Positions 32,386 through 64,000 of a DNA stretch of 64,000 nt are shown one piece after another (position 1 is the first letter of the stretch; every line of letters begins with the position of its first letter). Source of the stretch: Macrostomum lignano (taxonomy: Eukaryota); assembly GCA_002269645.1 (NCBI GenBank), contig NIVC01001091.1, positions 124,001 to 188,000 on the forward strand. Direction: 5' to 3'. Under the pieces are notes generated by a model, which was not told the origin of the DNA, searched no databases, and saw only the letters and a list, made by a program, of their open reading frames with translations. A program made the translations under genes and the position numbers.

Positions 32386-32442
32386 GTGCGGAGGCGGTCT
32401 CAGCAGTGGCCTGCTGAGCGACTAAAGTCCTCGGCGGGGACT

Positions 32443-35758: not shown

Positions 35759-36297
35759 TCCTTCAAAAATTCTAGCTATAGGGGCCTACACCTAACCATG
35801 GCCTAGGCCATAGCTATAAATAATTTTTTGTAGCTCATATTATAATTATCTAAAAAGGGCTATTGAAATAGTATTCTATTTTTATGCCTGGTTATGTTTT
35901 CCCTTTTAGCTCAATGTATATTTTATTATTTTATTATTTATTTTAGTACACTATCTTTGCTATATCAAAATATTATACTCTAGTTTACTTTTATGTGATA
36001 TAAACTTTGTTTACTTTCTTTTGTATCCCCAAAATTATATATTGATTGGTTAAAAGTTTAGTACTATGTATAGGCAGCCTTCCTATAAATCATCTAAATA
36101 AGATATATTTAAATAGTTTAAGAATCAGTACAGTTTATTATCTAAATATTTAAGAAAAATATCCTTTTTTGTTTTCAAGCTTTTAATAGCAAGTTTATAA
36201 TCCAATGCGAATGCATGTTGCTGCTAGGTGTCAGCAACTAAAGCAGTCGTCTGCTAAGATAAAATAGCCAAGTCTAAAAGTGAACATTTTTGAAGCA

Positions 36298-39013: not shown

Positions 39014-39491
39014 GACAACAAAACAATAAACAAATAAACAAATAGAAAAGCAAAGATTTTATTTCCTGGTTAGTTCGAGTCTGTTGCTGCTGTTCATTTT
39101 TACCATGTTAGGTTCTGTTGAATCTATTTAATAGCTACCTAAAAACCATCCCCTTAGTAACGTATTGATATACTGTCGGCCTTGCGCTTCTACTAATATT
39201 GTTATAATTAACATTCGGGATGTTACCTGGCCTTTTCTGACTTCCCAGACTGTTTTGCCACAGTTTTGCATTGAGCGTATTATTTAAATTCAATTGGTCG
39301 GCTTTCATTCGGTAGATTATTGGCATAAATCATATCATTTTTATTACTAGGGGTAAGACTGTGTCTTTGTGTTCGCATAGCTTCATATCCATTCATTCAG
39401 ACCGCTCGCACCATGGCGTCTTGCTTGTTTTATAATTTGTGATTATTATTTTATATAGATAATTTCTGTTCTGTTTGATTTTGCTTATCTA

Positions 39492-40093
<602 letters not shown>

Positions 40094-41102
40094 TCTATAT
40101 TTGAAATGAGATGTAAAGATTCCCTGCTATATTTAAATCGGATTGCAATTGGTTGTCAGTAATATAGGAATTATTATTGTTTCAATGCATTGTTTCAGTA
40201 TAGATTTAGTTATGTATTTCCGCGTGAGAGACTTCACAATCACTTCAACGGGACCCTGAGTCGTCCAAGAGTTCGTTGGTGTTGGCGCTTAAGTTTCTAC
40301 TAAATACTTGAATATACTAAAAACTATAAAAGACTCAATAGAGTTATAGACGCAACTCAGTGGTTCTACAGCGACTCTAGCACGCCTCAGACACGGCTCT
40401 GCGGTTCCAAAGTCGTGACATTTCGTCGTTTTATAATCTTCTAGAGTCACCTATTTTATCTGTGTTACCTGCAAACGACTCTGAGGCGATGCATGCCCTC
40501 TTAATATACTTTTGATTGCGGACTCATCTAAACTAAGCTTTTACTTATTGTTTTGTCTAGCTAAAAAGAAATAAAAGATATCTGATTAAAACAAATCGAG
40601 TTTCTCCTAACCCAAAAGGTTCTGGTGCCTTTTTTACTCTCTGTTTTGCTTCAAATCAATCCAAGATTTTTCTGCTTTACTGCTTTACAGTTTAGCCAGC
40701 AGTGTACGAGCGTAATTTTATCTAAACCGGTTTGGTTTATCAAACGCTATAGAGATTTCTTTCATTCTTGCTTGCTCAAGTTTCTAGAATAAGCAATGCA
40801 GATTAAAAACCAGTGAAAGCATTGCACATTTATCCGCTGATAAACACCGCAGGCTGTGCATTCCAGTTTTCTGGGTTTCTCTGATCCAGTTTCAGTTTGC
40901 AATTTATAAAAAAAATTAAAACAACAAAAAAGACAAAACCGAGTCGAGAACCAACCAATATTGCTTATTATGTTTGCTTTGTCCAGCAGTAGCGGCTTTG
41001 TCATGTGGTCTGATACGTTTTTTCTAACTATTAATATACTTATTATATGTAGTCTGTGGGTGTCTAAAATAGGAGTTAAGCAACTCCGTTAATACGATGG
41101 CA

Positions 41103-41657
41103 TCAGACCCCGGCCCCGGTCGGCTTCTTGTCTGTCGAAGCCTTGCGAGCGTCAGCAGACGACTTGCGATTGTCCACAGAGGACTTCCTGCTGGCCGGCT
41201 TCTCTGGCGGAATGATCAGCACGGGCCGGTGGGCGTGGTGCAGCACGTAGTCGGACACGCTGCCAAGGAATGTACGGCGCAGGGTGCCCATGCCGCGGTT
41301 GCCCATGATGATGATGCTGACGTTCTCCTCTTTGGCCACCTCGACAATTGACTGGCCGGGATTGTTGGTCACTCGTTCCACGAATTTGGTCTCGTTACTG
41401 ACGCCCAGCTGGCGGCAGCGCTCCCGCACCGCTTTGCCAATCTGGCTGCCGGCTTTCATTGCGTCCTTCATCATGTTGGCGTACACTTCGGAGTTGGCCA
41501 TCAGGCTGGCGCCGGTGCCCCGCGGCAGCGCCGGCGGCTCGATGGCGTACGTGAAGATGAGAACATCGGACGACTTGTTCATGTTGTCGGCGTAAAAGGC
41601 CACGGCCCGATGGCTGTGGTCGCTGCCGTCCACAGCGATAAGAATGCGCCGGGTCAT
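41103..41657 (-). CDS. Universal stress protein (UspA domain), single exon, 184 aa
   Basis: RRILIAVDGSDHS at the N-terminus and IIMGNRGMGTLRRTFLGSVSDYVLHHAHRPVLIIP with an intact G-2X-G-9X-GS ATP-binding motif. Strong GC3 codon bias. Confidence 0.95.
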   Translation of the reverse strand: MTRRILIAVDGSDHSHRAVAFYADNMNKSSDVLIFTYAIEPPALPRGTGASLMANSEVYANMMKDAMKAGSQIGKAVRERCRQLGVSNETKFVERVTNNPGQSIVEVAKEENVSIIIMGNRGMGTLRRTFLGSVSDYVLHHAHRPVLIIPPEKPASRKSSVDNRKSSADARKASTDKKPTGAGV

Positions 41658-42242
41658 GGCACGGCTTTCTCGGCTATTGCTTGTTGGCTCAACGAAGTTT
41701 GAGAATTCTATTTTTTAAAGATTTAGAGCGAGGCTTCGCCTACACTTTTATGCACAGGCGTCGAGGAGGGGCAATGCAGAGAGGTTGGAAATGCTATGGA
41801 GGGCTTATCTTTGTTAACTGTTCCAATGCCTGGCACGAGAGCTGCAGCTCTCTACTCGGCTCTGTGACTTTTGGTCTATTTCCAACGCTATTCTTATCCG
41901 TATCGGCGTGTTTAGTCTTCATGGTTCTTTTTAATCTAATCTCGATTTTCGCTCAATTATCAGTGTGTATATTTCTCCGAAAGAGCTGCACGTCCGAATA
42001 TTAAAATTATGGCAGCTGAAATAACTAATAATACATGTATTCGTCGAAACCTTTAGAAATTGGAAAAAATTTTGCGAATGCTTATAACTTTACCCCTTGA
42101 AATGTTGTGATTCAGGGTAAGCGTCAACAATTCAGTCATTCTAAGCTCCTGATCCCTAACCCCAAAATCCTTAAACTTGTTATTACACATGTACGTACCC
42201 TTTGTTGTAACTGTGTTTGTAGTGCATGTTCGTGTACTAAAG

Positions 42243-44047: not shown

Positions 44048-46749
44048 GACCCCAGGGAAGTTGACAGGTGCGGTCCTAAATCATGTGCAAAGTATAATAA
44101 AAGTCACTTGTCTAGACATCCTGGCACCAAAAGTGACTGCAAAACGCCCATAAATCAAAAGAGAAGGTAACAGAGCGAGTGGGGAGAAAGCTGGAAAGAC
44201 CTCTTTGACCCAGACAGGCTGGAGCCAGAAGTGACAGCTAGACCGCCATGAGTCACTAAAAACAGTGAAAAAGTCACAAATTAGGGGGTCAGAATGAGGT
44301 TAAAAAAATTCCTCCCAGACTTAGTGTCGCTTGTCGATCTAGACTGTTAGAGGTCAATCCGTCTCAGACCCAGACAGCCTGACCTTCAAAGATGCGTAAA
44401 CAACCCAAAATTAAAATCCTAAGGGAAGTACATTGAGTTGAGTATATATCTAACTTAAATTAATAATAATGTCATAAATTAGTATAGTGCGGTTTGCGGT
44501 TTTAAGATTGAAAAAAGATGCGTCCTCATCAAATAGTATTGAGAACTACATGTAATACGACCACTTTTTGGATATTTTAGGTAATTATTATGTGTGAAAA
44601 AAGTTTATGTAATTTAGCTATTTAAATATGAAGTTTTTATTACATTTAATAAAAGGATTTCTTCATACAGTTTCATGCATTTTATATGGGCTTGTTTCAG
44701 GATTTACGTCGAAATACGATCAGCTTTTTATGTTATTTAAGAAAAGGATGCTGTGAAATAGAAAAAAATGGACTTGTTAAATAAGTGAATTTTTAAGTAA
44801 GTTAATATAGCTTTTTTATTATGACTATATGTATTTTGCTGCTAAACAAATGCAAAATTGTGTGACAGAAGCATTGTGTAGTAGTCTTCGTGAAAGTTTA
44901 ATAACTCAATTAAATTCAATAGCTGTTTGAGACGTTAGCTAGCTTTATTTTAATTATTTTGTTTAAACAAGTGCATCTAATGAAATCAACTTCAAATTCA
45001 AAATAGAGTTTAATTTGCAGGTTTTTTGTTTTTATAGTTTATTATGAGCCAGCTCCCTGGGCAAACACTTTAAAAACACCAAAGTAAAACTATTCACTAC
45101 GTAACGCGTATAATGTTGTTGATTTTCAGAATTCTGACGCAAAAAACGCAAATTATACTACTATCTGAAAATGAAGTAAGTAGTATACAAAAACGCTATC
45201 CTAAGCGTGATTCAATATGTAGTTGTAATAATCCATGTGCTCATATTAATTCCATGTACATTAATCCCTATCTATCTCAAATTGTACATTAATTCCATGT
45301 ACATTAATCCCTATCCCAAATTGTCTATCCCCAATTCTACATGTACACTCACATTAATCTACAGTGTCATCCCCGTAGTCATAATAATCCATGTGCTCAT
45401 ATTAATTCCATGTACATTAATCCCTATCTATCCCAAATTGGATATGTACATTAATTCCATGTACATTAATCCCTAACTCAAATGTCCATGTCTATCCCCA
45501 ATTCTATATGTATGCAGTATGTGCATTAATCTACAGTGTCATCCCCAGCGCGCGCGCGCACCAAAATTACAACTCGAAACCCTACTACATGTACAGTGTA
45601 CAATCTCATCTACTACTACCAAATGAGTCAACTAATTGTGTAGCCTACAACGTAAATGTATATTTCCAATGTACATTTCTCAGACATTTGAATAATACGG
45701 GTCGGAGTCTATATGTACATCGATAGCCTCTATACTCATATCCGCTACATACCCCAAAAATTAGGTATGTACATTTTCACCCTCGGAGAATGTAGGTTTG
45801 AATATGCTGATAATTTATTCGAAATCACTTATAAAATACACATACTTTCATATAGAGGCGGGCCTGTACAAACTCTCGCCAAGCGATGGGGTGGAGTTTG
45901 CGTCATCCAAGCCTCTCCCAAGTCTGCCCCCCAAATACAAGACTGTGTTGAAGCAGTGCTTTATATTTCTATTGACAGTGGGTATGATACAAGACGCTTC
46001 GTCGCGCTTTAATTACAGTAAACCATCCCCTCGAAGCTCCTATACTGAATGCTGAATCACCCTTTAACTCGGACCATAGTCAAATTCAACCCTGTTCGAA
46101 AACAGCCACCCCTCCGATGTTTACCAGACACAGCGCAGACCCCATAACAAATCGAGCTAAATTTTAACACTCGCCCCTGTTCTCTCTGTCCCCCCTTCTA
46201 AATGCCAAGGAATTTCGACCCTCTCTCCATTTTCAGTGTACAAACAGATCTTTCCACAGCACAGACCTATATTAAACTTCAAAACCCCTCTCTTCTCCGA
46301 TTACGTCATCCATGCCGCCCCAGATAGCAAGAAACCAACTTTTAATGCACACATCAACCCCGCGAATCTGAGCAAATCCGAGTCCGCCAACCTCTACCTA
46401 CATTGACAAACCCCAGCTGCATTTGTAAATGTACACAGCCTATGAATCAGTGTCTCCACCGCATGCAATTCTGATTTACTTGATTCTGAAATTTGTAAAA
46501 TGTATAAGTCACCCTTGCGTTTACTAGAAGTAGTGAAGTCCACAAATTTAAATACGTGAGGCTATTCAATTCTGCCTCTCCGCCTCCCCTACCTTCTCAC
46601 TTCAAGCTTTCAGACTTGGTCTTTGAGACGGTTTAATCTGTTAGAAGCAGGAATGAATCATGCACTGACCTCTCCATACAAAGTAATGTTGGAATTTCAA
46701 ACAAGAAATTTGGTTATTTTGAAAGCTAAATGACTAGAAATGCACATTT

Positions 46750-48900
46750 TTCATTAAAATGCAGCTTTTCACAGTTTTTATGCATTTTTACGTTAAAATG
46801 CAGACTTTGTTGATCAAAATCAGTAGTTTCATCACTAGAAACCATACTTTCAACAGCTAATTTGTCCAAATGTCGCTTTCAACTTGACCTTAGACAGCTT
46901 TTAAGCAGGAATGAACCCCACACAAACATCCACAAGCCAGCCCAAAATCAGCCAAAGACATGGCTATTGAAGCCTAAATTGCTAGAAATGAGCATTTTTT
47001 CATAAGAAAATACAATTTTTCACAGTTTTTATGCATTTTTACGTTAAAATGCAGACTTTGTTGATCAAAATCAGTAGTTTCATCACTAGAAACCATACTT
47101 TCAACAGCTAATTTGTCCAAATGTCGCTTTCAACTTGACCTTAGACAGCTTTTAAGCAGGAATGAACCCCACACAAACATCCACAAGCCAGCCCAAAATC
47201 AGCCAAAGACATGGCTATTGAAGCCTAAATTGCTAGAAATGAGCATTTTTTCATAAGAAAATACAATTTTTCACAGTTTTTATGCATTTTTACGTTAAAA
47301 TGCAGACTTTGTTGATCAAAATCAGTAGTTTCATCACTAGAAACCATACTTTCAACAGCTAATTTGTCCAAATGTCGCTTTCAACTTGACCTTAGACAGC
47401 TTTTAAGCAGGAATGAACCCCACACAAACATCCACAAGCCAGCCCAAAATCAGCCAAAGACATGGCTATTGAAGCCTAAATTGCTAGAAATGAGCATTTT
47501 TTCATAAGAAAATACAATTTTTCACAGTTTTTATGCATTTTTACGTTAAAATGCAGACTTTGTTGATCAAAATCAGTAGTTTCATCACTAGAAACCATAC
47601 TTTCAACAGCTAATTTGTCCAAATGTCGCTTTCAACTTGACCTTAGACAGCTTTTAAGCAGGAATGAACCCCACACAAACATCCACAAGCCAGCCCAAAA
47701 TCAGCCAAAGACATGGCTATTGAAGCCTAAATTGCTAGAAATGAGCATTTTTTCATAAGAAAATACAATTTTTCACAGTTTTTATGCATTTTTACGTTAA
47801 AATGCAGACTTTGTTGATCAAAATCAGTAGTTTCATCACTAGAAACCATACTTTCAACAGCTAATTTGTCCAAATGTCGCTTTCAACTTGACCTTAGACA
47901 GCTTTTAAGCAGGAATGAACCCCACACAAACATCCACAAGCCAGCCCAAAATCAGCCAAAGACATGGCTATTGAAGCCTAAATTGCTAGAAATGAGCATT
48001 TTTTCATAAGAAAATACAATTTTTCACAGTTTTTATGCATTTTTACGTTAAAATGCAGACTTTGTTGATCAAAATCAGTAGTTTCATCACTAGAAACCAT
48101 ACTTTCAACAGCTAATTTGTCCAAATGTCGCTTTCAACTTGACCTTAGACAGCTTTTAAGCAGGAATGAACCCCACACAAACATCCACAAGCCAGCCCAA
48201 AATCAGCCAAAGACATGGCTATTGAAGCCTAAATTGCTAGAAATGAGCATTTTTTCATAAGAAAATACAATTTTTCACAGTTTTTACGCATTTTTTACGT
48301 TAAAATGCAGACTTTGTTGATCAAAATCAGTAGTTTCATCACTAGAAACCATACTTTCAACAGCTAATTTGTCCAAATGTCGCTTTCAACTTGACCTTAG
48401 ACAGCTTTTAAGCAGGAATGAACCCCACACAAACATCCACAAGCCAGCCCAAAATCAGCCAAAGACATGGCTATTGAAGCCTAAATTGCTAGAAATGAGC
48501 ATTTTTTCATAAGAAAATACAATTTTTCACAGTTTTTATGCATTTTTACGTTAAAATGCAGACTTTGTTGATCAAAATCAGTAGTTTCATCACTAGAAAC
48601 CATACTTTCAACAGCTAATTTGTCCAAATGTCGCTTTCAACTTGACCTTAGACAGCTTTTAAGCAGGAATGAACCCCACACAAACATCCACAAGCCAGCC
48701 CAAAATCAGCCAAAGACATGGCTATTGAAGCCTAAATTGCTAGAAATGAGCATTTTTTCATAAGAAAATACAATTTTTCACAGTTTTTACGCATTTTTTA
48801 CGTTAAAATGCAGACTTTATTGATCAAAATCAGTAGGTTTCATCACTAAAAACCACAATTTTAACACAAAATTATCACAAATGCTACTTCTGGAACTCTG
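46750..48900. repeat. 251-bp tandem satellite, 8 full units, in the left arm
   Basis: CAGACTTT anchors at 46801, 47052, 47303, 47554, 47805, 48056, 48308, 48559 and 48811. Degenerate units continue to ~49400. Confidence 0.96.
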
Positions 48901-49911
48901 AGACAGCTTTGAGCAGGAATTATAATCGCACACGGATTACCCGAGCCAGTCCAATTTCCACTAAAACCATGATTTTTTTAAAGCTAATTCTTAGAATTTC
49001 TCATTCTTTCGTTTAATAAAGGCCAATTTTCACAGTTTTATTATTTTCTAACGTTAAAATGCTAAATGCGAATTGATCAAACTTAGTAGTTTCATCCCAA
49101 AAACCATAATTTCAACCGCTAATTTGTCCAAATGCTGATTTCAAAGTTGGCAAGAGACAGCTTTCGAGCAGGAATGAGTCACACACTGATCTCCATATGC
49201 ACACCCCGCCCCAAGTTGGAATTCCACCCAAGGCATTTTCATTGAAAGCTAAATTACTAGAAATTGCACATTTTCGTTTTAAAAAGGTCAATTTTTACAG
49301 TTTTAACTCTTTTTAACGTTAAAATGCTGACTTTATTGAACAAAATGAATCACTTCATTCAGTAGAAACCATAATTTTTACAACTTAAAAATGCTGTTTC
49401 ATCATCAAATGTGTGTATTTGGTACGTGTAATACCCCTCAAGAAGTCAGGGAAGGGATTATTCTTGAATATTGGGTTAAAACGTACAGTTTGCTATAAAC
49501 CTAGCTTATAAAGCCGAGGGATGTTCCATAAGTACTTATACTTTTGCATGCTGCTCAGGAACTACGCAACCAATCATTGTAAGTTTTATGTCGCTGGAAA
49601 GCGGCTTTACTCATCTTTAATCTGTCGCCAAAATCATTTCGTTCTGTCAACTATGTCAAAAGTTACAACAAAAAACGTAGTCAAAGGTCACCCATAGACT
49701 TACAAGAAATTTTCAAAATCAAAACTTCAAAGTTCAGCACGCAGAGTTATTTTGGATTCTACATAATGCATTCTTTTTTGCTTCATAAGCGAATGCCACA
49801 CCCTTTTCGTCTATGGAAAATACTGGCCTAAGCTTTCACAGCATCTTAATCTTAAGATCACAGCATCTTAATCTTGTAAAGTTTCACCACCTTGGCTGCT
49901 GCTGCATCACC

Positions 49912-50997
49912 ATGGATGTGAACTCAAGGGAAGGACAGCGCGCTGCAATTTTTACCCTCTGGAAACTCGGAAAAAAGCGATCAGAGATTTATGCGGATTT
50001 ATGCAACATTCATGGAGCTAATGCGGTGAGCAGGATGACCGTCTACAACTGGGTTGAGCAGTTCGAAGCAGGAAGGACCAATGTTGCTGATTTGCCGAGG
50101 TCGGGCCGCCCCTGCACATCAGGCTCTGATGCTCTCACCGATCGAATTCTTGATCTGCTGGACGAAGATTGTCGGCTAACGATTCGACAGATTGCAGATA
50201 GACTGGACACGCCGAGCACAACTGTGCATCGCTGCTTGTCGCGCATGGACTTTGTCAAGCTGACTGCTCGTTGGGTGCCACGCCTACTCACCTCGGACTT
50301 GAGACTGCAGAGGCAGCAGATTTGTCAGGCCAATATTCGGATGATGGAAGAATACGGTGGTTGGGATCTCTTCCATCGAATGATAGTCACTGGAGATGAA
50401 ACCTGGATTCCCCATTTTGATCCACCAACGAAACGTGATTCCCAGGTCTGGATGCTGAAGGGCTCTGATCCTCCGGTAAAAGCTCAAAGGGACGCACATG
50501 GAAAGAAGATCATGCTGTCTCTGTTTTTCGACTGCAATGGTCCTCTAACTGTCGAGTTTTTGGAGCCAAACACTACAATAAACTCTGAGCGCTACGTTGA
50601 AACGCTAACAAAGCTGCATCATGACATCCAGAACAAGCGTCGTGAAAATCCCAGACCTTTCATTCTTCATCATGACAATGCAAGGCCTCATACAGCACAA
50701 AAGACAGTCGAGGCAATCAGCAAGCTGAAGCTCCATCTTCTACCTCACCCTCCTTACTCTCCAGACCTGGCACCAGCAGACTTTGCTTTATTTCCAGAGT
50801 TGAAGCGCCATCTGAAAGGACGCGTGTACGAGACCAGGAACCAGATCGAGGAGGAAGTCCGCAGAATTCTGCTGTATGTCATCCCCCGACAGCTGTACGC
50901 AGAAGCCATCAAAAGCATGTTTAACAGGTGGACCAAGTGCATCAACTCCGGTGGAAACTACGTTGAGAAGGTGTCGGTACCGACTGAGGATGAGTGA
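49912..50997 (+). CDS. Mariner (Tc1/mariner, DD34D) transposase, intact, 361 aa from ATG 49912 (upstream in-frame ATG at 49813)
   Basis: N-terminal HTH (VSRMTVYNWVEQF...RSGRP), WVPRLL, catalytic TGDETW, HHDNARPH and YSPDLAPADF with 34 residues between D2 and D3. No stops or frameshifts. Confidence 0.96.
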   Translation: MDVNSREGQRAAIFTLWKLGKKRSEIYADLCNIHGANAVSRMTVYNWVEQFEAGRTNVADLPRSGRPCTSGSDALTDRILDLLDEDCRLTIRQIADRLDTPSTTVHRCLSRMDFVKLTARWVPRLLTSDLRLQRQQICQANIRMMEEYGGWDLFHRMIVTGDETWIPHFDPPTKRDSQVWMLKGSDPPVKAQRDAHGKKIMLSLFFDCNGPLTVEFLEPNTTINSERYVETLTKLHHDIQNKRRENPRPFILHHDNARPHTAQKTVEAISKLKLHLLPHPPYSPDLAPADFALFPELKRHLKGRVYETRNQIEEEVRRILLYVIPRQLYAEAIKSMFNRWTKCINSGGNYVEKVSVPTEDE

Positions 50998-51879
50998 CAA
51001 AGAAGTCAAACTTTCTGTCATCAACAACGCGCCTCTGTTTTCATGCTTGCCATTGTAGTTGTTGCTCTTTAAATTTCTTGTAAGTCTATGGGTGACCTTT
51101 GACTACGTTTTTTGTTGTAACTTTTGACATAGTTGACAGAACGAAATGATTTTGGCGACAGATTAAAGATGAGTAAAGCCGCTTTCCAGCGACATAAAAC
51201 TTACAATGATTGGTTGCGTAGTTCCTGAGCAGCATGCAAAAGTATAAGTACTTATGGAACATCCCTCGGCTTTATAAGCTAGGTTTATAGCAAACTGTAC
51301 GTTTTAACCCAATATTCAAGAATAATCCCTTCCCTGACTTCTTGAGGGGTATTACACGTACCAAATACACACATTTGATGATGAAACAGCATTTTTAAGT
51401 TGTAAAAATTATGGTTTCTACTGAATGAAGTGATTCATTTTGTTCAATAAAGTCAGCATTTTAACGTTAAAAAGAGTTAAAACTGTAAAAATTGACCTTT
51501 TTAAAACGAAAATGTGCAATTTCTAGTAATTTAGCTTTCAATGAAAATGCCTTGGGTGGAATTCCAACTTGGGGCGGGGTGTGCATATGGAGATCAGTGT
51601 GTGACTCATTCCTGCTCGAAAGCTGTCTCTTGCCAACTTTGAAATCAGCATTTGGACAAATTAGCGGTTGAAATTATGGTTTTTGGGATGAAACTACTAA
51701 GTTTGATCAATTCGCATTTAGCATTTTAACGTTAGAAAATAATAAAACTGTGAAAATTGGCCTTTATTAAACGAAAGAATGAGAAATTCTAAGAATTAGC
51801 TTTAAAAAAAATCATGGTTTTAGTGGAAATTGGACTGGCTCGGGTAATCCGTGTGCGATTATAATTCCTGCTCAAAGCT

Positions 51880-53025
51880 GTCTCAGAGTTCCAGAAGTAG
51901 CATTTGTGATAATTTTGTGTTAAAATTGTGGTTTTTAGTGATGAAACCTACTGATTTTGATCAATAAAGTCTGCATTTTAACGTAAAAAATGCGTAAAAA
52001 CTGTGAAAAATTGTATTTTCTTATGAAAAAATGCTCATTTCTAGCAATTTAGGCTTCAATAGCCATGTCTTTGGCTGATTTTGGGCTGGCTTGTGGATGT
52101 TTGTGTGGGGTTCATTCCTGCTTAAAAGCTGTCTAAGGTCAAGTTGAAAGCGACATTTGGACAAATTAGCTGTTGAAAGTATGGTTTCTAGTGATGAAAC
52201 TACTGATTTTGATCAACAAAGTCTGCATTTTAACGTAAAAATGCATAAAAACTGTGAAAAATTGTATTTTCTTATGAAAAAATGCTCATTTCTAGCAATT
52301 TAGGCTTCAATAGCCATGTCTTTGGCTGATTTTGGGCTGGCTTGTGGATGTTTGTGTGGGGTTCATTCCTGCTTAAAAGCTGTCTAAGGTCAAGTTGAAA
52401 GCGACATTTGGACAAATTAGCTGTTGAAAGTATGGTTTCTAGTGATGAAACTACTGATTTTGATCAACAAAGTCTGCATTTTAACGTAAAAATGCATAAA
52501 AACTGTGAAAAATTGTATTTTCTTATGAAAAAATGCTCATTTCTAGCAATTTAGGCTTCAATAGCCATGTCTTTGGCTGATTTTGGGCTGGCTTGTGGAT
52601 GTTTGTGTGGGGTTCATTCCTGCTTAAAAGCTGTCTAAGGTCAAGTTGAAAGCGACATTTGGACAAATTAGCTGTTGAAAGTATGGTTTCTAGTGATGAA
52701 ACTACTGATTTTGATCAACAAAGTCTGCATTTTAACGTAAAAATGCATAAAAACTGTGAAAAATTGTATTTTCTTATGAAAAAATGCTCATTTCTAGCAA
52801 TTTAGGCTTCAATAGCCATGTCTTTGGCTGATTTTGGGCTGGCTTGTGGATGTTTGTGTGGGGTTCATTCCTGCTTAAAAGCTGTCTAAGGTCAAGTTGA
52901 AAGCGACATTTGGACAAATTAGCTGTTGAAAGTATGGTTTCTAGTGATGAAACTACTGATTTTGATCAACAAAGTCTGCATTTTAACGTAAAAATGCATA
53001 AAAACTGTGAAAAGCTGCATTTTAA
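51880..53025. repeat. 251-bp tandem satellite, 4 full units, inverted, in the right arm
   Basis: AAGTCTG anchors end at 51973, 52225, 52476, 52727 and 52978. Confidence 0.96.
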
Positions 53026-55283
53026 TGAAAAATGTGCATTTCTAGTCATTTAGCTTTCAAAATAACCAAATTTCTTGTTTGAAATTCCAACATTACTTTG
53101 TATGGAGAGGTCAGTGCATGATTCATTCCTGCTTCTAACAGATTAAACCGTCTCAAAGACCAAGTCTGAAAGCTTGAAGTGAGAAGGTAGGGGAGGCGGA
53201 GAGGCAGAATTGAATAGCCTCACGTATTTAAATTTGTGGACTTCACTACTTCTAGTAAACGCAAGGGTGACTTATACATTTTACAAATTTCAGAATCAAG
53301 TAAATCAGAATTGCATGCGGTGGAGACACTGATTCATAGGCTGTGTACATTTACAAATGCAGCTGGGGTTTGTCAATGTAGGTAGAGGTTGGCGGACTCG
53401 GATTTGCTCAGATTCGCGGGGTTGATGTGTGCATTAAAAGTTGGTTTCTTGCTATCTGGGGCGGCATGGATGACGTAATCGGAGAAGAGAGGGGTTTTGA
53501 AGTTTAATATAGGTCTGTGCTGTGGAAAGATCTGTTTGTACACTGAAAATGGAGAGAGGGTCGAAATTCCTTGGCATTTAGAAGGGGGGACAGAGAGAAC
53601 AGGGGCGAGTGTTAAAATTTAGCTCGATTTGTTATGGGGTCTGCGCTGTGTCTGGTAAACATCGGAGGGGTGGCTGTTTTCGAACAGGGTTGAATTTGAC
53701 TATGGTCCGAGTTAAAGGGTGATTCAGCATTCAGTATAGGAGCTTCGAGGGGATGGTTTACTGTAATTAAAGCGCGACGAAGCGTCTTGTATCATACCCA
53801 CTGTCAATAGAAATATAAAGCACTGCTTCAACACAGTCTTGTATTTGGGGGGCAGACTTGGGAGAGGCTTGGATGACGCAAACTCCACCCCATCGCTTGG
53901 CGAGAGTTTGTACAGGCCCGCCTCTATATGAAAGTATGTGTATTTTATAAGTGATTTCGAATAAATTATCAGCATATTCAAACCTACATTCTCCGAGGGT
54001 GAAAATGTACATACCTAATTTTTGGGGTATGTAGCGGATATGAGTATAGAGGCTATCGATGTACATATAGACTCCGACCCGTATTATTCAAATGTCTGAG
54101 AAATGTACATTGGAAATATACATTTACGTTGTAGGCTACACAATTAGTTGACTCATTTGGTAGTAGTAGATGAGATTGTACACTGTACATGTAGTAGGGT
54201 TTCGAGTTGTAATTTTGGTGCGCGCGCGCGCTGGGGATGACACTGTAGATTAATGCACATACTGCATACATATAGAATTGGGGATAGACATGGACATTTG
54301 AGTTAGGGATTAATGTACATGGAATTAATGTACATATCCAATTTGGGATAGATAGGGATTAATGTACATGGAATTAATATGAGCACATGGATTATTATGA
54401 CTACGGGGATGACACTGTAGATTAATGTGAGTGTACATGTAGAATTGGGGATAGACAATTTGGGATAGGGATTAATGTACATGGAATTAATGTACAATTT
54501 GAGATAGATAGGGATTAATGTACATGGAATTAATATGAGCACATGGATTATTACAACTACATATTGAATCACGCTTAGGATAGCGTTTTTGTATACTACT
54601 TACTTCATTTTCAGATAGTAGTATAATTTGCGTTTTTTGCGTCAGAATTCTGAAAATCAACAACATTATACGCGTTACGTAGTCTATTCATAGCTGAAAA
54701 ATAACTTGTAATGAAAAGGAGTCTGTACTAATGATATCGACATAATAAGAGATGGTCTCATGGCATGTTTAGGTTGAATTTCTAATAGAATTTGCATCGA
54801 CTAAACGCAGTCTTGTTAGCTCAAAAAGAAAGTAAAAATAAAAGAAGACAGTTTTTTAGTACTGAAGGTACGGTTAAAAATATTTGCTTGGATTTGGTCA
54901 TTGAGACAATGTTTTATTTAAATTATTTTATGTCGGAATAATTTTAGGAATATTGAATATATGTAGGCTTTAACGTACATGTAAATTGCAAAGCAAAATA
55001 TAGCATAATCTTTTAGTCACACTAATCATGAATGACGAAATTTTTGTTTTTAAATATGGTATTTAATTTATAATTCAGATTCAATATGCTTTTAAAAGTG
55101 TTTCTTCCTAAGGCCTGCATTTTCCTAGATTTTACTACATTGTCCTCAGTCGATGTTGCTACTTAGACTAGAAATTCCATTTTGGACATGGGTTCGCCTT
55201 AATTTCTTATCGTGGACTTTGTATATGTCAATTGCTAGAGTTGCTCCAAAAACTTCAGAGCTTAACGCGGGCGAACAAGTTCA

Positions 55284-58200
55284 ATGAAATCCTCAGATGA
55301 TGCCGACAGCTCAGCAGTCACCTCAAAAAACCACCAGACGGCTCAGCCATCGCAGACAGTCGCCAGAAATCCACTGCTTCACCGGCACTCGTCAAAGATC
55401 CTCAAACTAGCAGGCGATGGAGACTTACCTGGCACGCGCCTGGCCGCCAGTCCGAGCTACCAAGGCGTTATGCTCGGCGACTTGGCCAACGTGCCACCTG
55501 AGAATAGCCGCGTCGTACGCATCTTTCTATCGTCGACCTTCTCCGACATGTCGGCGGAGCGCAACTACCTCATGCAGCGCGTCAATCCCCGGCTGAAAAG
55601 GTTCTGTAGAGACACCTACGGACTGGAATTTCACACCATCGACATGCGCTGGGGCGTAGGCGACGATGTTCAACTAGATCATCGGGGTCCGGAAATCTGC
55701 TACCAGGAGATCCAGAATGCCCTGCTGACGTCAGCCGGCCCCTATTTTATTTGCCTGCTCGGTCAACGGTATGGCAATCAGCCGCCAGCTGCAACAGTGG
55801 AGACTGACACCTTTGAAAAGATTATTTCGGCTCTTACAGCCGATGGCCAGGACGTGTCCTGTCTGCGGGACTGGTACGCCATTGACGTCAACAGTCAGCC
55901 GCCGGTTTGCGTGCTGAAGCCCATTGCGACACCGGCTGAGGCGGTGAGCTGTGGATACTTTATAGTACCTGTAAAAATTAACACGAATTATTGTGGAAAA
56001 ATTGGATAAGTAGTACGAACTTCGGTCACAAATTTATAGGTAAATAAGCTATTCCAAGGAAACGGTACTGGCCAACACGAATTTTATACCAAAAATTATG
56101 AGATGTGACCTTACAGAAATCAACTCCACCTTCCAGGGAAATGAGACACCCCTGCTTGAGTCTCAGTGCCGAGTTCGCGATCTATTTCGCTCATTTCTGC
56201 ATTAAGCAGCATATACATATTCAATATTAGTGGTGTTGTTTAGCATTTTAGTAGAATTAAGTGATTTTTCTTCATGGTTCTTGATCAAATGAGCAAACGA
56301 AGTGTGTTTTGCTTGTTGCTATAATCGTTTAAATACGAGCGTGATCTCTACCGAAACTTTTTAGACCGATAAGGAGTTTCTTAGAAAGGCTCATCAGAGC
56401 TGGGCAGCTGTGAGCGATCGCCTAATTGACTTGATGCGGAGAGGCGCCGAGCTCTGCTTCCAATGCGGCCAAATTTCGCAGATGCAAATGAAGAAACTCA
56501 CCGCTTCGGTCACGGAGACGGAGATTCTAAATGGAATTTTGTCAATGCCCGAGAAGAGGCTGGCGCAGGCGCTGGCATTTGTCAGGGAGTACTCCAATCT
56601 GGAGACGCAGCGCGATCTGTCCCGCGGCAAGCTGTTTAAGTTTATCGACCTAATGGATTCTGTCGACGAAGCTGGCAAACCAGTGAAGGTTATTAACCCC
56701 ACTGTGAACCAGATGGTAAAGCAACTCAATGAAAGTGTTCTAACTAGTTTGCCCAGCTCAAATGCATTTAAATACTCGCTCGAATGGACCGACGATCACG
56801 ATGGCGCAAGTTTGGACTCGAAAGAAAACTATCTAGAGCGCTTCGGTAATGACTATTGCTGTGAAGTTCAGCGACTTGTGGCCGAATCCGTGCGGGAGAG
56901 CATGCGACTTCGATCCGACGATCTCTATTCAGAGGTGCTGCAGCACTCGACTGCGTGCGTCAACTACGTGAAGAAGTTCCAGGGTCGGCAAGAGATCATC
57001 GACAAGGTGAAGGCTTATGTGCAAGCGAGCAACACAACGGAGCCTCTGGTGGTGTACGGCGACTCGGGCAGCGGCAAGACCTCTCTACTTGGCAAGGCCG
57101 CCAGTCTGGTGCGAAGCTGGTTGCCAGAGTCCGATTCCAAAGATGCCATCGTGCTGCTGCGATTCCTCGGTACCAGTCCCGGTACGTCGAGCATTCGACA
57201 GACACTCAAGTACCTGTGCCGTCAGCTCGCTGTGTTCGGCAACGAGGACGACCAGGAAAAGTGCCAGTTGCTCGACGACTTCAAGGAGATCTTGAACACC
57301 TTCTACTCCATGCTCGAACGCATGGGCCAGTTCAGGAGAATCTTGGTGTTCCTTGACAGTGTTGATCAGCTGGACAGCTCTGACGGTGCCTACCATCTGA
57401 CGTGGGTGCGGACGCCATTGCCTGCCAACGTGAAGATGGTTGTGTCCACGCTGCCCAACATGTTCGACTTGCTGAAGACATTCAAAGGGAAACTGCCGAA
57501 CCCAGACTTCTACGTAGAGGTGACGCCACTGGAGACCAGTCTGTGCACCAGCATTTTGTCGGCGCTGCTCAGCGAACAAGGTCGCACTCTGAACGAGCAG
57601 CAATGGGCTCTGGTCGAGCAGGCATTCTCCAAGTGCTCACTGCCAATCTATGTTCACCTGCTGTACCACGAGGTTCTGAGATGGCGCTCTTACCAACAGG
57701 TAGATGAGTCGTCTCTGCGCTACACCGTTCGTCAGGCAATATTTCAGCTGTTCGAGAAACTCGAGTTGAAGCACGGCAGGCTGTTTGTAAGTACTTCATG
57801 TTAGTTACAGTAGCCCAGGCTAGTGAGAATAACCCACTACTATCCACTTATCTACAGTGATTGGATTTGATTTTCCAGACATCTCACGCCCTGGCATTCA
57901 TCACTGCATCGAGAAACGGACTGTCAGAGTCGGAGCTGGAGGATCTGCTCAGTCTGGATGACGCCGTCCTCATTGACGTGTTTCAGCATCACCTGCCGCC
58001 CTTCATCCGCATCCCGCCGATCTGCTGGGCTCGACTTCGTCACGACATTGGCTCTTACCTGGTCGAGAGAGAGGCGGACAACATCCGGGTAGAGTTCTGG
58101 TACCACCGACAGTTCATCGAGGTGGCTCAGGAGTACTTCTTGTCGGACGAAAAGACCAGACGGGACATTCACTCCATCATGGCAGACTACTTCTTGGGTC

Positions 58201-61200
58201 TGTGGAGCGGCAGGAGAAAGAAGTTCGTGTACCCAGCCTATCTGCGCAAGAAGCTCGTAAGTGATGACCGCTGCAGTTGATCTGCTCTCTGAAACGCCTT
58301 CAATGCGTTCTCACTGCTCCCCTCCAGAACCTGCCCGAGTTCTCAATGGAGGATCGAGCCGTTCCCGAGCAGCCATTCGTGCTCCGCAAAGATGAGGACG
58401 GCACTGCTCAGTACAACCTGCGAAAGCTGAACGAGCTGCCGTGGCACCTCATCAAGTCCGGTCGAGTGAACGAGTTCTACGACTACATTGTGTTTGACTA
58501 CGACTTCATGTTCAACAAGCTGAAGGGCACGTCTCGGTACCTGCTGCTGAGAGACCTCGACCTCCCGCAGAAGCTCGGAGTCGAGTACACCAAAGAGGCC
58601 GAGCTCGTGTACAATGCAATCCGACTCTCCGCTCAGAGTCTCGTGTACGACCCTGTCAATCTGAGCGTTGATCTCATCGGTCGGCTCATCATGTACGAGA
58701 AGGACTGTCCTCGAGTGAAGCTGCTGCTCAACCAGTGTCGCCAGTCGAAACAGGCTCTCAGCAACTGCTGCCTCATCCCGAAAGTGCAGTGCTTCGACTC
58801 CGGGTCTGGAGTTCTCTACTCCAGTTTCGATCTGGGTCTTGGACTAGGCATCATGCTTCCGAATGGTCAGGTGGCGGCCTTCTCGCTCATTAATAACGAC
58901 ATCACGTTTTACGATATCGAGGGAAATGAGATTAAGCGTTTTCCAAGCAACTACAACTTTGCAGTTAGTTTAAAGTACCTCGCAGAGGGCAACGTGCCCG
59001 TGTCAGAGGACTGCGTGGCAACTGTGATTGCTTTGCGGGATAAAAACATGCCGGTAGATGAGGAGGAAGTAGAATCTGCCCAGGGCTCTGGTTCAGATTC
59101 AGAACAGTACGATGTTGTTCGCCTAGACTTTATTAATGGAAAAGCTACCAAGTTGATGTCTCTGGCTCGACCACACAAACTAAGCATTCAAGATATTCAT
59201 ATAGTCACGGAGAACTACATCCTCCTTGGGAAAAGCCAATCAGATACTAGCATCGACGTGAGTTTATTGTCAATAAAAGACAATATTCTAGTTCCCCTTT
59301 TGGATGATCAGGTTTTAGTGCCCTCATCTTTCGGACGGCAATACCTGGACCCAGAGCAAGACCGTATCTGCGTTGGAATTTCCACCAAAAAGTCGAAATC
59401 CACCTTTTTACTGTTCAAAAACTTGAAGACTGGGGCAGTTTTGAACGGAGACTTGCTCGATATATTCCGATCTGTAGACAAGTCGAATCTCGAGGCTATT
59501 TGTTCGCCATCCGACATCAGTCAACGGCCACGAAATCCAGGACTAATCGATCTGCTGCACCAGGCGACTCACATAGCATTGGGCTGTTGCTGTTTAGCCC
59601 CAGACGGCAGCGTCGTAGCACTACTGTCGGTGCACAGTGCCGAGCTGACCGAGTGCACTATACTAGTGACATTCTGCACATGTGCTGAGGCTCTGCGGCC
59701 GACCTATATTGTAGACACCGGCTCGAGATTTCTTTCGAAATCGACGCAATGCATTCGCAGCGCCTCTATGAATCGAATCGCATTTTTTATTGAGATGTCA
59801 ACAAATAAAACTGAAAGTTCCAGTCAAACGCCCTCCATGCGCAGAGGCTACATCTACGAATGTCACTCAAAGCGAGCGGTTGAGCTCCGCATTGATGACA
59901 ATCTGAGCAGATTCTCAAAGTCGCTCAAAAAGTTCGGCAAATCGATGCGTGCATGCTTCACAGAGAATGAAAAACTGCTGGTGACCAACGAATTCCAAAC
60001 TTTACTGTTAGTTTGGTCAGTGCAAACTGGCCAGCTGTTGCACGGAATCAAGGATGGCGCAGCTGAGGGAATTCTGTGCGGTCAACCCAAGGGCACTGAG
60101 TTCATGACTATCTGCTACTTTCCCAACTTTCCTGACAGCATGAACATCTCATTGAAGGTCTACAATCTGGGAGTCTTTAATCAGGAAAATCAGCCAGTTG
60201 AGCAGGGTGGCATGACCCTGCCATTGTTCACCCACCGGTTCGCCTGGTCCTGCTGTGCCAAAGTTGCCGGAGAGCCTCGCAAGATAGAAGTCCTCGGCGA
60301 GGAACCAAAAGATACGCTGCTGTTGGACTCCGAGTCTCTGGAAGTCAGTCGTGTCGGTGCCGCAGGCCAGGCAGACTTTGTGCGAGTTCTTATTGATGAG
60401 CCGCGAGTTGAGCTGGTCAGAAAATCGTCCAATCAAGGCAAAGTGATTCTGGTCCTGCCCAACTGCCAGCTTGAGAACGTGCTTTCTGTTTCACAGCAGA
60501 TTCAGGAACCAGATGTGAAGCCAGAACCCTGCGCCATTGAGGAGCCCAAGAAGTTTTTAGAAGACCTAGAATTCACCGTGCTAGTCACCAAGGCTTCGGA
60601 TGGGACTGAGAATCGTCACGTGACATCAGCGCCGTTGCGCGAGTACAGCAGTTTGATATTTACGTCGACACCAATTTCGCAATTCTATTCCGATTCGCCT
60701 CTAATTTTTGTTGACGAATCGAGAAAACTATTGATGTCAATGACTTTCAATAAAAGCTTTCTATCATATGATGTTGCTGTTTCGACTATTAATCTAGAAA
60801 CGTTTTCCGGAGAGCAAAGCAAAATTAACTTGGAAAACCTTGAAGCGGAGCATCCATTTTCCGATCAATTTCTAAGCGTGTTTAATTACGTAATTGCCAA
60901 CGAGCTCAGGCCTGCCGCTAGAAACCGAGCTCAAACAGCGGATGAAAGTAACAAGGAACTGAGCCTTTACAATCTGACTACTGGGGAAAGGCAGTCGAAA
61001 ATCAATAAGTTCTTTCAGTACTACCTGCGCAACAGAACTAGCTGCATCGAAATCCAGTTCGTTGCAGAGCAACGGATTTTGAACCTGGCGATCTCGCAAA
61101 AGGAACAGGCTGCCAAGCTGATTCGCACCGGAGTTGGCGTGCCGTCCATATGGCTTGGCTTTGTCATCCGATTGGAGTATGGCGAAACGTCAATACCGCA

Positions 61201-63877
61201 GTCGAGCTTGTGTCAGCGCAACAGTAAATACTTCGATATGGGGCCTTCAGTTGCATTTCTGAGCGACAACCAGCACCTGGTGAACTACAAGCTGCAGATT
61301 GTGGACTACATGGCAGGAGACGTGATTCGCTGTATCCGGCCGGATGAGGAGCTGCACTTTCTGCAGCTGAAGGTTAGAAGTCTTAAAAATTTAAAGCATT
61401 CCTTTCGTAACTTCTACTACGAGCAATAGGTTTGTTTACACAATTTCCCTCACGAAAAATTACAGGTCACTCGCGACGAAAGTCTTCTTGTTGGCCAGCT
61501 GTTCTTTCCATCGTACGAGGTCAACGTTGCCGCGTTTGCAAAAATTAGTGCCAACGAAAAAGAAGAGGGCACATTCGCTATTTTGCCACCGCGTTGTGTT
61601 CAGGTGAATGATCTGCATAACATTGCTGAAATATTTCTGAGAATAATCAGTACTCGACCGTAGCTCAGGACAGGGGGGTCTTTCTCGAAAATTGCGTAAT
61701 TTCTATGGTAAGTTCGATCTTAAGTTAGAACTTTACGCTCTCCGAAAGATCAATACTAAGCCAGTTTCTCGAAACTCGCTTAGACTTTGCGTGACTTACG
61801 CGATTCGTAAGTCTAGTTAAGTCGATAAAATGTTGTCTATGGAAGAGAAGACAAAAAATCAAATCTAAAAAGCTAATTTTAATAATATGGATTTCTTGCT
61901 TTATTTTTTACTAACAGTAATAGGAATTGGGCACCAGTTTTATTTTATTTTATTTTATTTTATTTTATTTTATTTTAGGAAAGTACCCAAAGAAATACAT
62001 GCATGTACAAGCAAAAGATTATAATGTTTTAGAACGCGAGCAGTTGTTAACCAGTTTTTTTGGCTTGACAGCTAAAAGTCGTAACAGATCAACTCAATTA
62101 AAGTAGACAATCAACCCGCACAACTCCACATTGACCCCCTAAATCACAGAACTCACCAGTTGTCGTGGACATCACTACCAATCACACCCTCAGACCAGAG
62201 TTTCTCTTCAGACGTCGGCTCTCATTGAATTCCCCGTCCTTCCAGAGGCTCCATGGCTTTCCGCATAGGTTGAACAAGTAGTATCTATTGCAGCATGCTG
62301 AAAATAATTCTTCAACGTAAAAGCGCCATAGCAATCACCACATTGATTTCGGATCTCTAAGACAAAACACTTAAGAACGTAGTTGAGATCGCGCTTGCTC
62401 AAACTCGGATGCTGGTGCCAATGGCAAGTCACTTTAGACAGCTTCGATTTCAGCAACACTACAAAGTGATTCAATGCAAATAACTCGAAAATGTCACAGA
62501 AAAGGTTTAGTAGAGATAAAGACAACTACTCACTACTCTTAAATATAGGATTCAATACTTGGTCACGAGTGCGCGAAGCAACACGATTTGCCTTTGCCTC
62601 GGCCAAAAAAAGCACACATGTTCTTTGTATCTAAGGACCAACTTCTTTTGCGATTAATTCGAAGTTTTCCCGAAGTGAAGCTCTCAGTGCACGATTGAGC
62701 ACTACTCAACCTGCTTTTTAAAACAGGTGTACCGCATCAGCGATGGCTCACGACTAGCCAACTATCTGTTCGAGACCAGCCCTCTTGGCTTCTGTATCTT
62801 CGGACAGCCTGACCGAGACCTATTGGGGTTGTTTCAAAACAAGCCCCTACAACTGTTCTGTCTGGTTGAACCACCCGAAGACGCTGAGGCGACAGCAACA
62901 GTGCATTCAGTGCAGCGCACGGAAGCGGCCGAAAGTCTGGCTTCTTTGTCGCACAATGAAATGGATTACGAAAATCAACTGGACAGTCTACGTGAGCTTC
63001 TTGGTTATTTGTAATATTTGTAATTGGATTTCTTGAAGTTTTACTGGGATTATATAGTGTCCGAGCTCCGTCCCCGCTTCCTGTCCCAGAACGAGTCCTT
63101 TGGGCCTCCTGTCCCAGAACGAGTCCTTTGGGTCCCCTGTCCCAGCACAAGTCCTTTGGGTCTCCTGTACCAGCACGAGTCCTTTGGGTCTCCTGTACCA
63201 GCACGAGTCCTTTGGGTCTCCTGTCCCAGCACGAGTCCTTTGGGTCTCCTGTCCCAGCACGAGTCCTTTGGGTCTCCTGTCCCAGCACGAGTCCTTTAGG
63301 CCTCCTGTCCCAGCACGAGTCCTTTGGGTCCCCTGTACCAGCACGAGTCCTTTGGGCCTCCTGTCCCAGCACGAGTCCTTTGGGTCCCCTGTCCCTGCAC
63401 GAGTCCTTTGGGTCTCCTGTCCCAGCACGAGTCCTTTGGTTCTCCTGTCCCAGCATGAGTCCTTTGGGTCCCCTGTCCCAGCACGAGTCCTTTGGGTCCC
63501 CTGTCCCAGCACGAGTCCTTTGGTTCTCCTGTCCCAGCACGAGTCCTTTGGTTCTCCTGTCCCAGCACGAGTCCTTTGGGTCCCCTGTCCCAGCACGAGT
63601 CCTTTGGTTCTCCTGTCCCAGCACGAGTCCTTTGGGTCCCCTGTCCCAGCACCAGTCTTCAGGCGTCTCCAGTCCCACAGTGTCCAATCAGTTTAACAGT
63701 TTCAGTTTAACATTCCACTCAATTCAATGGATGGCAGGTGTAGCCCTGGGCCAGGCCATGCTCGAACTGGCCGTCGCTCGCCCTTCGGACCCCGTCGCAT
63801 TTCTTGCCAACGCTCTGCTACGATTGAGGCCTTCCTGCGTTGGAGACCCTCAGGTTTCCACCGAGAAGCGAGCTTAA
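55284..63877 (+). CDS. NWD1/NWD2-like STAND NTPase (DUF4062 + NACHT + divergent beta-propeller region + C-terminal Dpy-30-like motif), ~2015 aa; exons 55284-55943, 56365-57786, 57879-58256, 58328-61372, 61466-61603, 62727-62991, 63738-63877
   Basis: [17 protein letters not shown]...IDMRWGV (DUF4062), Walker A GDSGSGKT, Walker [24 protein letters not shown] and [13 protein letters not shown] are NWD-type motifs. All junctions are GT-AG with compatible phases (0,0,0,0,0,1). AATAAA lies immediately after the stop. Confidence 0.85.
63075..63655. repeat. 28-bp minisatellite (TTTGGGTCTCCTGTCCCAGCACGAGTCC) filling the last intron of the NACHT gene
   Basis: 28-nt period (63181 vs 63209); it explains the repetitive track ORFs at 62737-63877. 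Confidence 0.96.
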
Positions 63878-64000
63878 TAATAAAGAGTGCTTAACATTGT
63901 TGAATTAAAATATTTGCTTTACTACCAGCAAAGTATGTATGCTTACATTTCGAGGTCAAATTGTACGTGATTTGATGACGTGCAAATGTGGCGATGAAGA

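Follow-up and report, generated by a model that had tools for sequence, protein, structure and literature searches.

The NWD1/NWD2 family of STAND proteins, as recently defined (bioRxiv 10.64898/2026.09.21.753143), includes NWD2 (KIAA1239), NWD1 and the C. elegans proteins QUI-1 and T05C3.2. According to 2026 preprints, the DUF4062/TeTIR domains of NWD1, NWD2 and TEP1 are TIR-like, with TEP1 being an active NADase and the isolated NWD2 domains weakly active (bioRxiv 10.64898/2026.09.21.753143). The NWD1 ortholog QUI-1 acts in the ciliated ASH and ADL neurons of C. elegans (PMC8871372). We analysed a stretch of 64,000 nucleotides (nt) from the flatworm Macrostomum lignano, a laboratory model (assembly GCA_002269645.1, contig NIVC01001091.1, positions 124,001 to 188,000; hereafter the window, in whose numbering all coordinates are given). 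Positions 55284-63877 of the + strand probably form a single seven-exon gene encoding an NWD2-like STAND NTPase of about 2015 amino acids (aa) with a C-terminal Dpy-30-type dimerization/docking (D/D) domain. We found that this Dpy-30 tail is the conserved C-terminus of the NWD2-like family throughout rhabditophoran flatworms.

Dpy-30 domains pair in DPY30, DYDC1/2, RSP2, AK7 and NME5 into an X-type four-helix bundle, with a groove that takes up an amphipathic helix from a scaffold protein (PMC3494852, PMC8339350). The scaffold helices bound are those of ASH2L/Bre2 in COMPASS and of RSP3 in radial spokes (PMC3494852, PMC8339350; PDB entry titles). In sequence as well as in structure, the flatworm tail was matched best by DYDC1, DYDC2 and Chlamydomonas RSP2 (DYDC2 in 8j07: E 7.7e-11, Foldseek probability 0.99), and they have in common with it the signature LxQALxEVAxxRPxDPIE[FY]LAxWL, which is clearest in the M. 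lignano paralogs P0004, P0005 and P0138. DYDC1, DYDC2 and RSP2 are small axonemal proteins in which the Dpy-30 domain is N-terminal and which dock on the A-kinase anchoring protein (AKAP) RSP3 (PMC3494852), whereas the flatworm domain forms the very end of an NTPase of 2000 aa. DPY30, the COMPASS/MLL subunit, belongs to the same Pfam family as the tail (profile match to 3g36, E 7.1e-8) and forms a homodimeric four-helix bundle that clamps the amphipathic helix of ASH2L/Bre2 (titles of 4riq, 4rt4 and 6e2h); it is, however, a stand-alone adaptor of 99 aa, while the flatworm module is fused to an enzyme-sensor and its helix 1 is more divergent. AK7 and NME5, both matched by the tail profile and both axonemal components in structures 9fqr, 9d2f and 8j07, follow the same design logic, in which a Dpy-30 domain is attached C-terminally to a catalytic body, but their bodies are unrelated nucleotide kinases without a STAND oligomerisation module. 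Finally, the RIIa domain of protein kinase A (PKA) belongs to the same D/D superfamily (PMC8339350) and showed weak similarity to the tail (PF02197, 17.9 bits), but this score is below the Pfam threshold and the tail is not a member of RIIa.

The gene model was assembled from stop-to-stop open reading frames (ORFs) and splice sites, and comprises seven exons on the + strand with a coding sequence of 6048 nt and a protein of 2015 aa (exon boundaries are marked below by a slash). Exon 1 (55284-55943) contains the start codon and the N-terminal DUF4062/TIR-like (TeTIR/NIR) effector domain and ends at the donor GCG/GTGAGC; DUF4062 (PF13271) scored 38.5 bits against a cut-off of 24.7, and the N-terminal domain matched the TEP1 TeTIR crystal chain 11gz_A with an E-value of 9.8e-14. 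Its SVTE(T)E segment may be the counterpart of the catalytic region of TEP1. Exon 2 (56365-57786; splice sites TTTTTAG/ and TTT/GTAAGT) encodes the NACHT/AAA_16 NTPase (NACHT, PF05729, 39.7 bits against 26.7; AAA_16, 46.5 bits against 32.6), with GDSGSGKTS as its Walker A motif. Exon 3 (57879-58256; splice sites TTTTCCAG/ and CTC/GTAAGT) encodes the NWD1-type winged helix-turn-helix domain (PF25469, 31.7 bits against 27). The best matches of the full model were M. lignano NACHT proteins with 58-67% local identity, followed by trematode proteins named 'NWD1', while the best matches outside flatworms were NWD2 proteins of many phyla (34-38% identity over the N-terminal half). The protein thus has the DUF4062/TIR-like, NACHT and NWD1-type winged helix domains in common with NWD1 and NWD2, but it is longer by about 300 aa.

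Exon 4 (58328-61372) is predicted to encode a helical linker followed by a long, divergent WD-repeat-like sensor region. The Pfam scan of the 1053-aa ORF containing this exon gave no match, WD40 included, so that the C-terminal half differs from NWD2 and NWD1 in having no Pfam-detectable WD40 repeats. A flatworm C-half profile, running from NLRKLNELP to the C-terminus (exons 4-7), was nevertheless colinear with the C-terminal region of NWD2 over 820 columns (hhalign probability 99.9%, E 4.5e-33), a score that derives in part from the well-conserved first ~150 residues of the half. The NWD2-type proteins of other phyla in this comparison have WD40 listed in their database entries, and the alignment extends to the last blade, where the exon 6 block stands opposite the last blade of NWD2 (IRVFRISDGKKIA; IRVFRISDGKKIATF). 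The intervening exon 5 (61466-61603, 46 codons; donor CAG/GTGAAT) encodes a blade-like segment with an LL(V/I)G(Q/K)..P block conserved in Macrostomum and trematodes. AlphaFold2 modelling of the last 260 aa gave blade-like strand groups, a low-confidence linker of ~30 residues and a helical hairpin; with a mean pLDDT (predicted local distance difference test) of 46.6, this model informs on the secondary-structure layout only. We read the sensor half as a divergent NWD2-type repeat region, and the predicted order from N- to C-terminus would be TIR-like DUF4062 effector, NACHT, NWD1-type winged helix, divergent WD-repeat-like sensor, variable linker and Dpy-30-type D/D domain.

The tail itself is encoded by the last two exons. 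Exon 6 (62727-62991) has the acceptor aaaacag/GTGTAC at 62726/62727 and the donor CTAC/GTGAGC at 62991/62992, in phase 1, and comprises the last blade (VYRISDG...YLFE.SP), the variable linker and, from ~62961, the first half of Dpy-30 helix 1. Intron 6 (62992-63737, 746 nt, phase 1) interrupts helix 1 and carries a minisatellite. Exon 7 (63738-63877) starts after the acceptor GGCAG/GTGTAG at 63737/63738, with the codon split across the intron being C+GT, an arginine, and encodes the remaining D/D domain (Pfam-matched over 63746-63829), a short tail and the stop codon TAA at 63875-63877. The polyadenylation signal AATAAA, read from the sequence, lies 1 nt past the stop codon at 63879-63884. For the exon junctions of the window copy, we relied on canonical splice signals together with conservation.

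The joined tail matched the Pfam Dpy-30 family (PF05186) with 30.7 bits (gathering cut-off 22) and an E-value of 2.6e-7, while RIIa (PF02197) remained sub-threshold with 17.9 bits against a cut-off of 22.4; we therefore rejected membership of the RIIa family. All seven flatworm tails that we aligned matched PF05186 (best E 4.6e-14), and the core signature RPxDPxx[FY][LI]Axx[LI] was present in the window, with the R, D, P and A columns invariant in the seven-sequence alignment and the RPxDPxx[FY][LI]A core retained across flatworm lineages. When the flatworm-tail profile was compared to PDB sequences, DYDC2 ranked first (8j07, E 7.7e-11; also 8wzb), followed by DYDC1 (5.7e-8), DPY30 (3g36, 7.1e-8; also 4riq and 6e2h), AK7, NME5 and RSP2; PKA RI-alpha was reached at E ~0.2 only. 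The AlphaFold2 monomer of the 62-aa tail was predicted to have a long helix at residues 2-30 that turns at RPSD into another at residues 35-45 (mean pLDDT 79.9, core 90-97), and its top 29 Foldseek matches in PDB were all Dpy-30 domains, though at non-significant E-values, with target-normalised TM (template modelling) scores of at most 0.71 and probabilities of at most 0.99. By its sequence, the tail is a bona fide Dpy-30 module. All the sequence statements of the initial annotation for this end of the gene held on direct reading of 61400-64000, and its interpretation was supported in part: a NACHT/STAND protein (in fact of NWD type) whose exons 62727-62991 and 63738-63877 join in phase 1 before a stop codon and AATAAA, and whose C-terminus is a Dpy-30-type D/D motif supported by PF05186 above its cut-off and by the PDB profile matches to DYDC2 and DPY30. 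Of the four Pfam families that it had named for the spliced protein, Dpy-30, NACHT and DUF4062 scored above their cut-offs and RIIa below.

Comparison with relatives shows that the tail belongs to the NWD gene. In the M. lignano paralogs P0002/3, P0004/7, P0005, P0136 and P0138 (1800-2100 aa), the NWD body continued uninterrupted into a C-terminal ...RPxDPIEFLAxxLL. Outside Macrostomum, the tail was contiguous with the NWD body in six species of Schistosoma (S. haematobium, S. bovis, S. margrebowiei, S. spindalis, S. turkestanicum and S. guineensis), in Paragonimus heterotremus and Calicophoron daubneyi, and in the monogenean Cichlidogyrus casuarinus. Schistosomes are major parasites. Along the alignment of the last 260 aa, the blocks LL(V/I)GK..P, P(P/A)R...(A/V)Y..SDG and Y.FE.EP were conserved between Macrostomum and trematodes and were followed by the variable linker and the Dpy-30 motif. 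We also compared intron positions with two paralog loci of the same M. lignano assembly (L001 and L002) and with a Paragonimus locus (L003). Both paralog loci have introns at the place of the CVQ/VY junction that joins exons 5 and 6 (61603 to 62727; ...LQ/VY... in the paralogs), and a phase-1 intron within Dpy-30 helix 1, at codon -14 from the RP turn, was found in the window, L001, L002 and L003, in the last of which it measures 7.9 kb. Because of this contiguity in paralogs and orthologs and these shared intron positions, the tail exon is an old and fixed part of the NWD gene. As Macrostomum and a trematode both have helix 1 interrupted by this phase-1 intron, the Dpy-30 tail was probably acquired only once.

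Several observations weigh against a single gene that ends in a working Dpy-30 domain at this locus. First, the existing annotation gives the tail as a separate 56-aa protein starting at an internal methionine. Second, the frame of exon 4 runs into a TAG at 61427-61429, which the model removes with intron 4 (61373-61465, 93 nt; donor AAG/GTTAGA, acceptor TTACAG/); this donor is atypical, with a T at +3, no intron is present at the join of exons 4 and 5 in either L001 or L002, and if intron 4 is left unspliced, the NWD protein ends at 61429 and lacks the tail. Third, a search of the last 244 aa against a set of 5.8 billion proteins recovered the paralog fragment P0121 alone, and no Logan transcript fragments. 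Finally, the tail of the window aligned to PF05186 over positions 14-41 only (28 of 42), with positions 1-13 unmatched, its motif E-value (2.8e-7) was far weaker than that of the best family member (4.6e-14), and the Foldseek E-values were at least 0.28 and not significant, the domain being so short.

The first of these points favours a different gene structure, in which exons 6-7, or their 3' part from the methionine at 62961, form a stand-alone 56-aa Dpy-30 gene, possibly a downstream cistron that is trans-spliced to a spliced leader, and the NWD gene ends at the TAG. The UniProt protein A0A1I8GQD6 (P0123; 56 aa, M. lignano) matches the joined tail with 100% identity and uses the junction from 62991 to 63738, and a second 56-aa M. 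lignano entry, A0A1I8JL63, falls in the same 90% cluster; both are named 'DUF2783 domain-containing protein', and an exact look-up of the 56-aa product found no contig. Stand-alone short Dpy-30 proteins are common, and the TAG stays in frame after exon 4 unless the non-consensus GTTAGA donor is used where the paralogs have no intron. We nevertheless consider a separate gene unlikely. The frame upstream of the methionine is open and conserved through exons 5-6, which align in frame with paralog P0003 at 51% identity over 260 aa and contain blocks invariant as far as trematodes; the boundaries of both exons match paralog introns; the 93-nt segment has the composition of an intron and can be excised exactly; and the tail is fused to the NWD body in every well-assembled relative. 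Moreover, a comparable 48-aa mini-protein is found in Schistosoma (P0122), although the tail there clearly makes part of a protein of 2200-2300 aa, for which reason we regard the 56-aa and 48-aa models as annotation artefacts. A separate small gene for the last exon, which the initial annotation had allowed for, thus has its counterpart in the 56-aa annotation, but the comparative evidence makes that entry a fragment.

Fragments of this kind accompany incomplete models elsewhere in the family. The models of S. mansoni (Smp_145280, P0008), S. japonicum (P0013) and Heterobilharzia (P0019) end in spurious read-through sequence at the conserved last intron, and the deposited models P0001 and P0006 also lose or frameshift the Dpy-30 exon, with the lost tails surviving as the orphan mini-proteins P0122 and P0123. 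The intron before the last exon is long or filled with repeats. Several public models have missed or orphaned that exon, the 56-aa M. lignano entries among them.

Intron 4 is the weak joint of this copy. The 61373-61465 segment is the sole canonical in-frame GT..AG pair around the TAG, with no other in-frame donor/acceptor pair available. Removal of its 93 nt gives a gap-free alignment to the paralog (LHFLQLK/VTRDESLL against LYFVRLQ/ATPDCSLL; paralog side ATPDCSLLVGQVYFP), its GC content of 0.32 contrasts with 0.53 and 0.49 in the flanking exons, and its length is compatible with those of further short introns in this gene (92 and 71 nt). Intron 4 is most likely a recently gained intron, to judge from these features, and possibly a truncating insertion in the window copy. 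An origin from an introner or transposon was discarded, as we found no further copies in the window, L001 or L002.

If the segment were a truncating insertion, the window copy would be a decaying or truncated paralog in which 93 nt with a stop codon disable the C-terminal 180 aa and leave the Dpy-30 exons as untranslated relics. In line with such decay, the TAG-bearing insertion is unique to the window copy, the Dpy-30 motif is the weaker one given above, and the public sets searched hold no full-length or high-identity protein for the rest of the locus, the best match being 66% identical. Yet the seven exons are open over a coding sequence of ~6 kb with canonical GT..AG sites, exons 5-7 (46 + 88 + 46 codons) contain neither a stop nor a frameshift and retain the family-invariant residues, and the polyadenylation signal follows directly on the stop codon. 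A tract of 1.95 kb that is 96-100% identical to a paralog also speaks of recent sequence exchange, read as gene conversion. Decay of this copy therefore seems to us unlikely, and an intact seven-exon gene the better account. A chance resemblance of an amphipathic helix without D/D function, to which the 28 aligned Pfam positions out of 42, the sub-threshold RIIa score and the Foldseek E-values could be taken to point, is already disfavoured and very improbable, given the PF05186 score above its gathering cut-off, the core retained across flatworm lineages, the PDB profile matches to DYDC2 and DPY30 at 1e-7 to 1e-10 and the confidently predicted helix-turn-helix.

We examined the distribution of the tail with an exhaustive HMMER search of a 247-position tail profile against 1.84 billion cluster representatives, which returned 252 proteins at E ≤ 1e-3 and 15 at E ≤ 1e-10. 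All the family-level matches, and all those at E ≤ 1e-10, that could be named were flatworm proteins: M. lignano paralogs and sequences from trematodes, monogeneans and the cestode Schistocephalus, the model of which ends before the tail. The remaining listed matches covered the Dpy-30 part only and were, by their length, mostly short proteins; the longer ones that we read were an AK7-like kinase (P0229), an ankyrin-repeat protein (P0148) and a spider protein with several Dpy-30-like repeats (P0150). Among the best 150 of the 252 matches, as far as named or read, there was no long NACHT protein outside flatworms. A short-tail profile run against a word-indexed protein set gave 9 matches, within the limits of the word index.

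Some NWD1/2 homologs of other phyla have a different end. Of the 120 best NWD1/2 homologs, 29 terminate in a CaaX box, in most cases with basic residues ahead of it, and none of the flatworm entries does. The proteins bearing it (among P0015-P0120) come from molluscs, a brachiopod, spiders, hemichordates, echinoderms, amphioxus, a coral, nematodes and an annelid, with ends such as ...KSQACVIS, ...KKSHFCQIL and ...KSKTCQVL. The flatworm Dpy-30 domain occupies the position that the CaaX box has in those 29 homologs, so the Dpy-30 tail apparently stands in flatworms in place of a lipid-anchor motif. From their sequence, the CaaX tails suggest prenylation-dependent membrane anchoring in the NWD1/2 STAND family, and, because of these tails in 29 of 120 relatives, the C-terminus is suggested to be a localisation device in the family. 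A phylum-wide swap from CaaX to Dpy-30 suggests that C-terminal subcellular anchoring is selected in the NWD family.

For the flatworm protein, we propose that two tails would pair into an X-type four-helix bundle and that the sensor would be a constitutive tail-to-tail dimer, tethered through a flexible linker to an amphipathic-helix scaffold. The groove of the bundle would clamp the amphipathic helix of this scaffold protein, and the clamping would hold the NTPase, along with its TIR-like effector domain, at one defined place in the cell; flatworms would in this way have swapped lipid anchoring for protein docking as their C-terminal localisation device. It is reasonable to suppose that the tail may serve pre-dimerization or docking on an AKAP or ciliary scaffold. 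A ciliary scaffold as the docking site would be a reasonable guess, because QUI-1 acts in ciliated neurons and the best matches of the tail are radial-spoke proteins. That flatworms re-wired an ancestral lipid-anchored NWD2-type sensor, by means of its DYDC/RSP2-like tail, into a pre-formed dimer docked on an AKAP-type helix (RSP3 in cilia, or a flatworm-specific scaffold) seems to us rather improbable. Were it true, the protein, whose TIR-like domain may be an NADase, would act in ciliated or sensory cells as a switch that consumes NAD+ or signals within a confined space, in parallel to QUI-1 in ASH and ADL, and the expansion of the Macrostomum paralogs into several groups, with their sequence exchange, would amount to a diversification of sensors on a fixed docking platform. 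The tail in any case offers a concrete handle that can be used as bait for the partner scaffold.

A search of the accessible literature found no description of a NACHT + Dpy-30/DPY30 architecture, and the combination is not mentioned in the TeTIR preprint (bioRxiv 10.64898/2026.09.21.753143) or in the D/D-superfamily survey (PMC8339350). Several public M. lignano entries, however, already have NACHT together with PF05186 in their precomputed Pfam annotation. The novel STAND architecture claimed by the initial annotation is in this sense undescribed in the literature but present in databases, and, far from being peculiar to the locus, such a C-terminus is standard in the NWD2-like family of flatworms: a lineage-specific variant of a known family and not a new kind of system.

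The minisatellite of intron 6, which had also been recognised at the outset, spans 63079-63677 with a period of 28 nt, 21.4 copies and 92% matches (Tandem Repeats Finder), and a pattern search with its unit gave 20 matches against 0 expected by chance. Read-through from exon 6 into the intron meets a stop at 63012. Further on, the frames are open on both strands through the minisatellite because the repeat unit contains no stop codons, and this openness is therefore no evidence of coding; we rejected the open frame as a coding sequence, the stop-free 28-nt unit being open in all six frames. The last intron of paralog L001 contains, at 9009-9171 of that locus, a degenerate tandem repeat (period ~26-28 nt, 6 copies, 68% matches), the unit of which (TCCTTCCCAGAG...) is similar to that of the window (TCCTGTCCCAGCAC...). 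In both, each unit resembles a 3' splice site, with a pyrimidine run followed by CAG. In a further M. lignano paralog, the model P0145 continues past the last blade into a VRNSMRNS repeat. It seems that 3' introns filled with repeats are a recurring feature of the flatworm NWD2-like family. Intron 5 contains a perfect (TTTTA)8 microsatellite at 61938-61977, and its minus-strand ORF at 62211-62525 had no Pfam match.

Further upstream in the gene, about 1.95 kb (56900-58850, from NACHT to the early sensor, introns included) showed 96-100% DNA identity to paralog L001 (NIVC01004056.1), compared to 50-72% in the flanks of this tract; the protein identity reached ~99% for residues 401-1000. This tract looks like a recent gene conversion between NWD paralogs, with a chimeric assembly as the alternative.

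Mobile elements lie elsewhere in the window. A mariner/Mos1-type DDE transposase ORF (Pfam Transposase_1 and HTH_48) is located at 49789-50994 and is flanked by giant, near-perfect inverted arms (45096-54683), of which the longest exact pair measures 2698 nt (45096-47793 and 51986-54683). The arm pairs overlap with an offset of 251 nt, which suggests internal tandem repeats, and more pairs continue the arms toward the ORF; the mariner-type element ends ~600 bp upstream of the NWD start codon. Ty3/gypsy-like remnants occupy 29655-33800 (-), with integrase (rve, Integrase_H2C2), reverse transcriptase-RNase H and gag ORFs in a GC-rich block (0.56). We also found a CCHC zinc-knuckle ORF that continues into a low-complexity repeat (36268-37755, +), a (GA)n/(TC)n-type microsatellite of 600 bp (~39450-40160) and an intact-looking universal stress protein (Usp) ORF (99.6 bits; 41106-41714, -).

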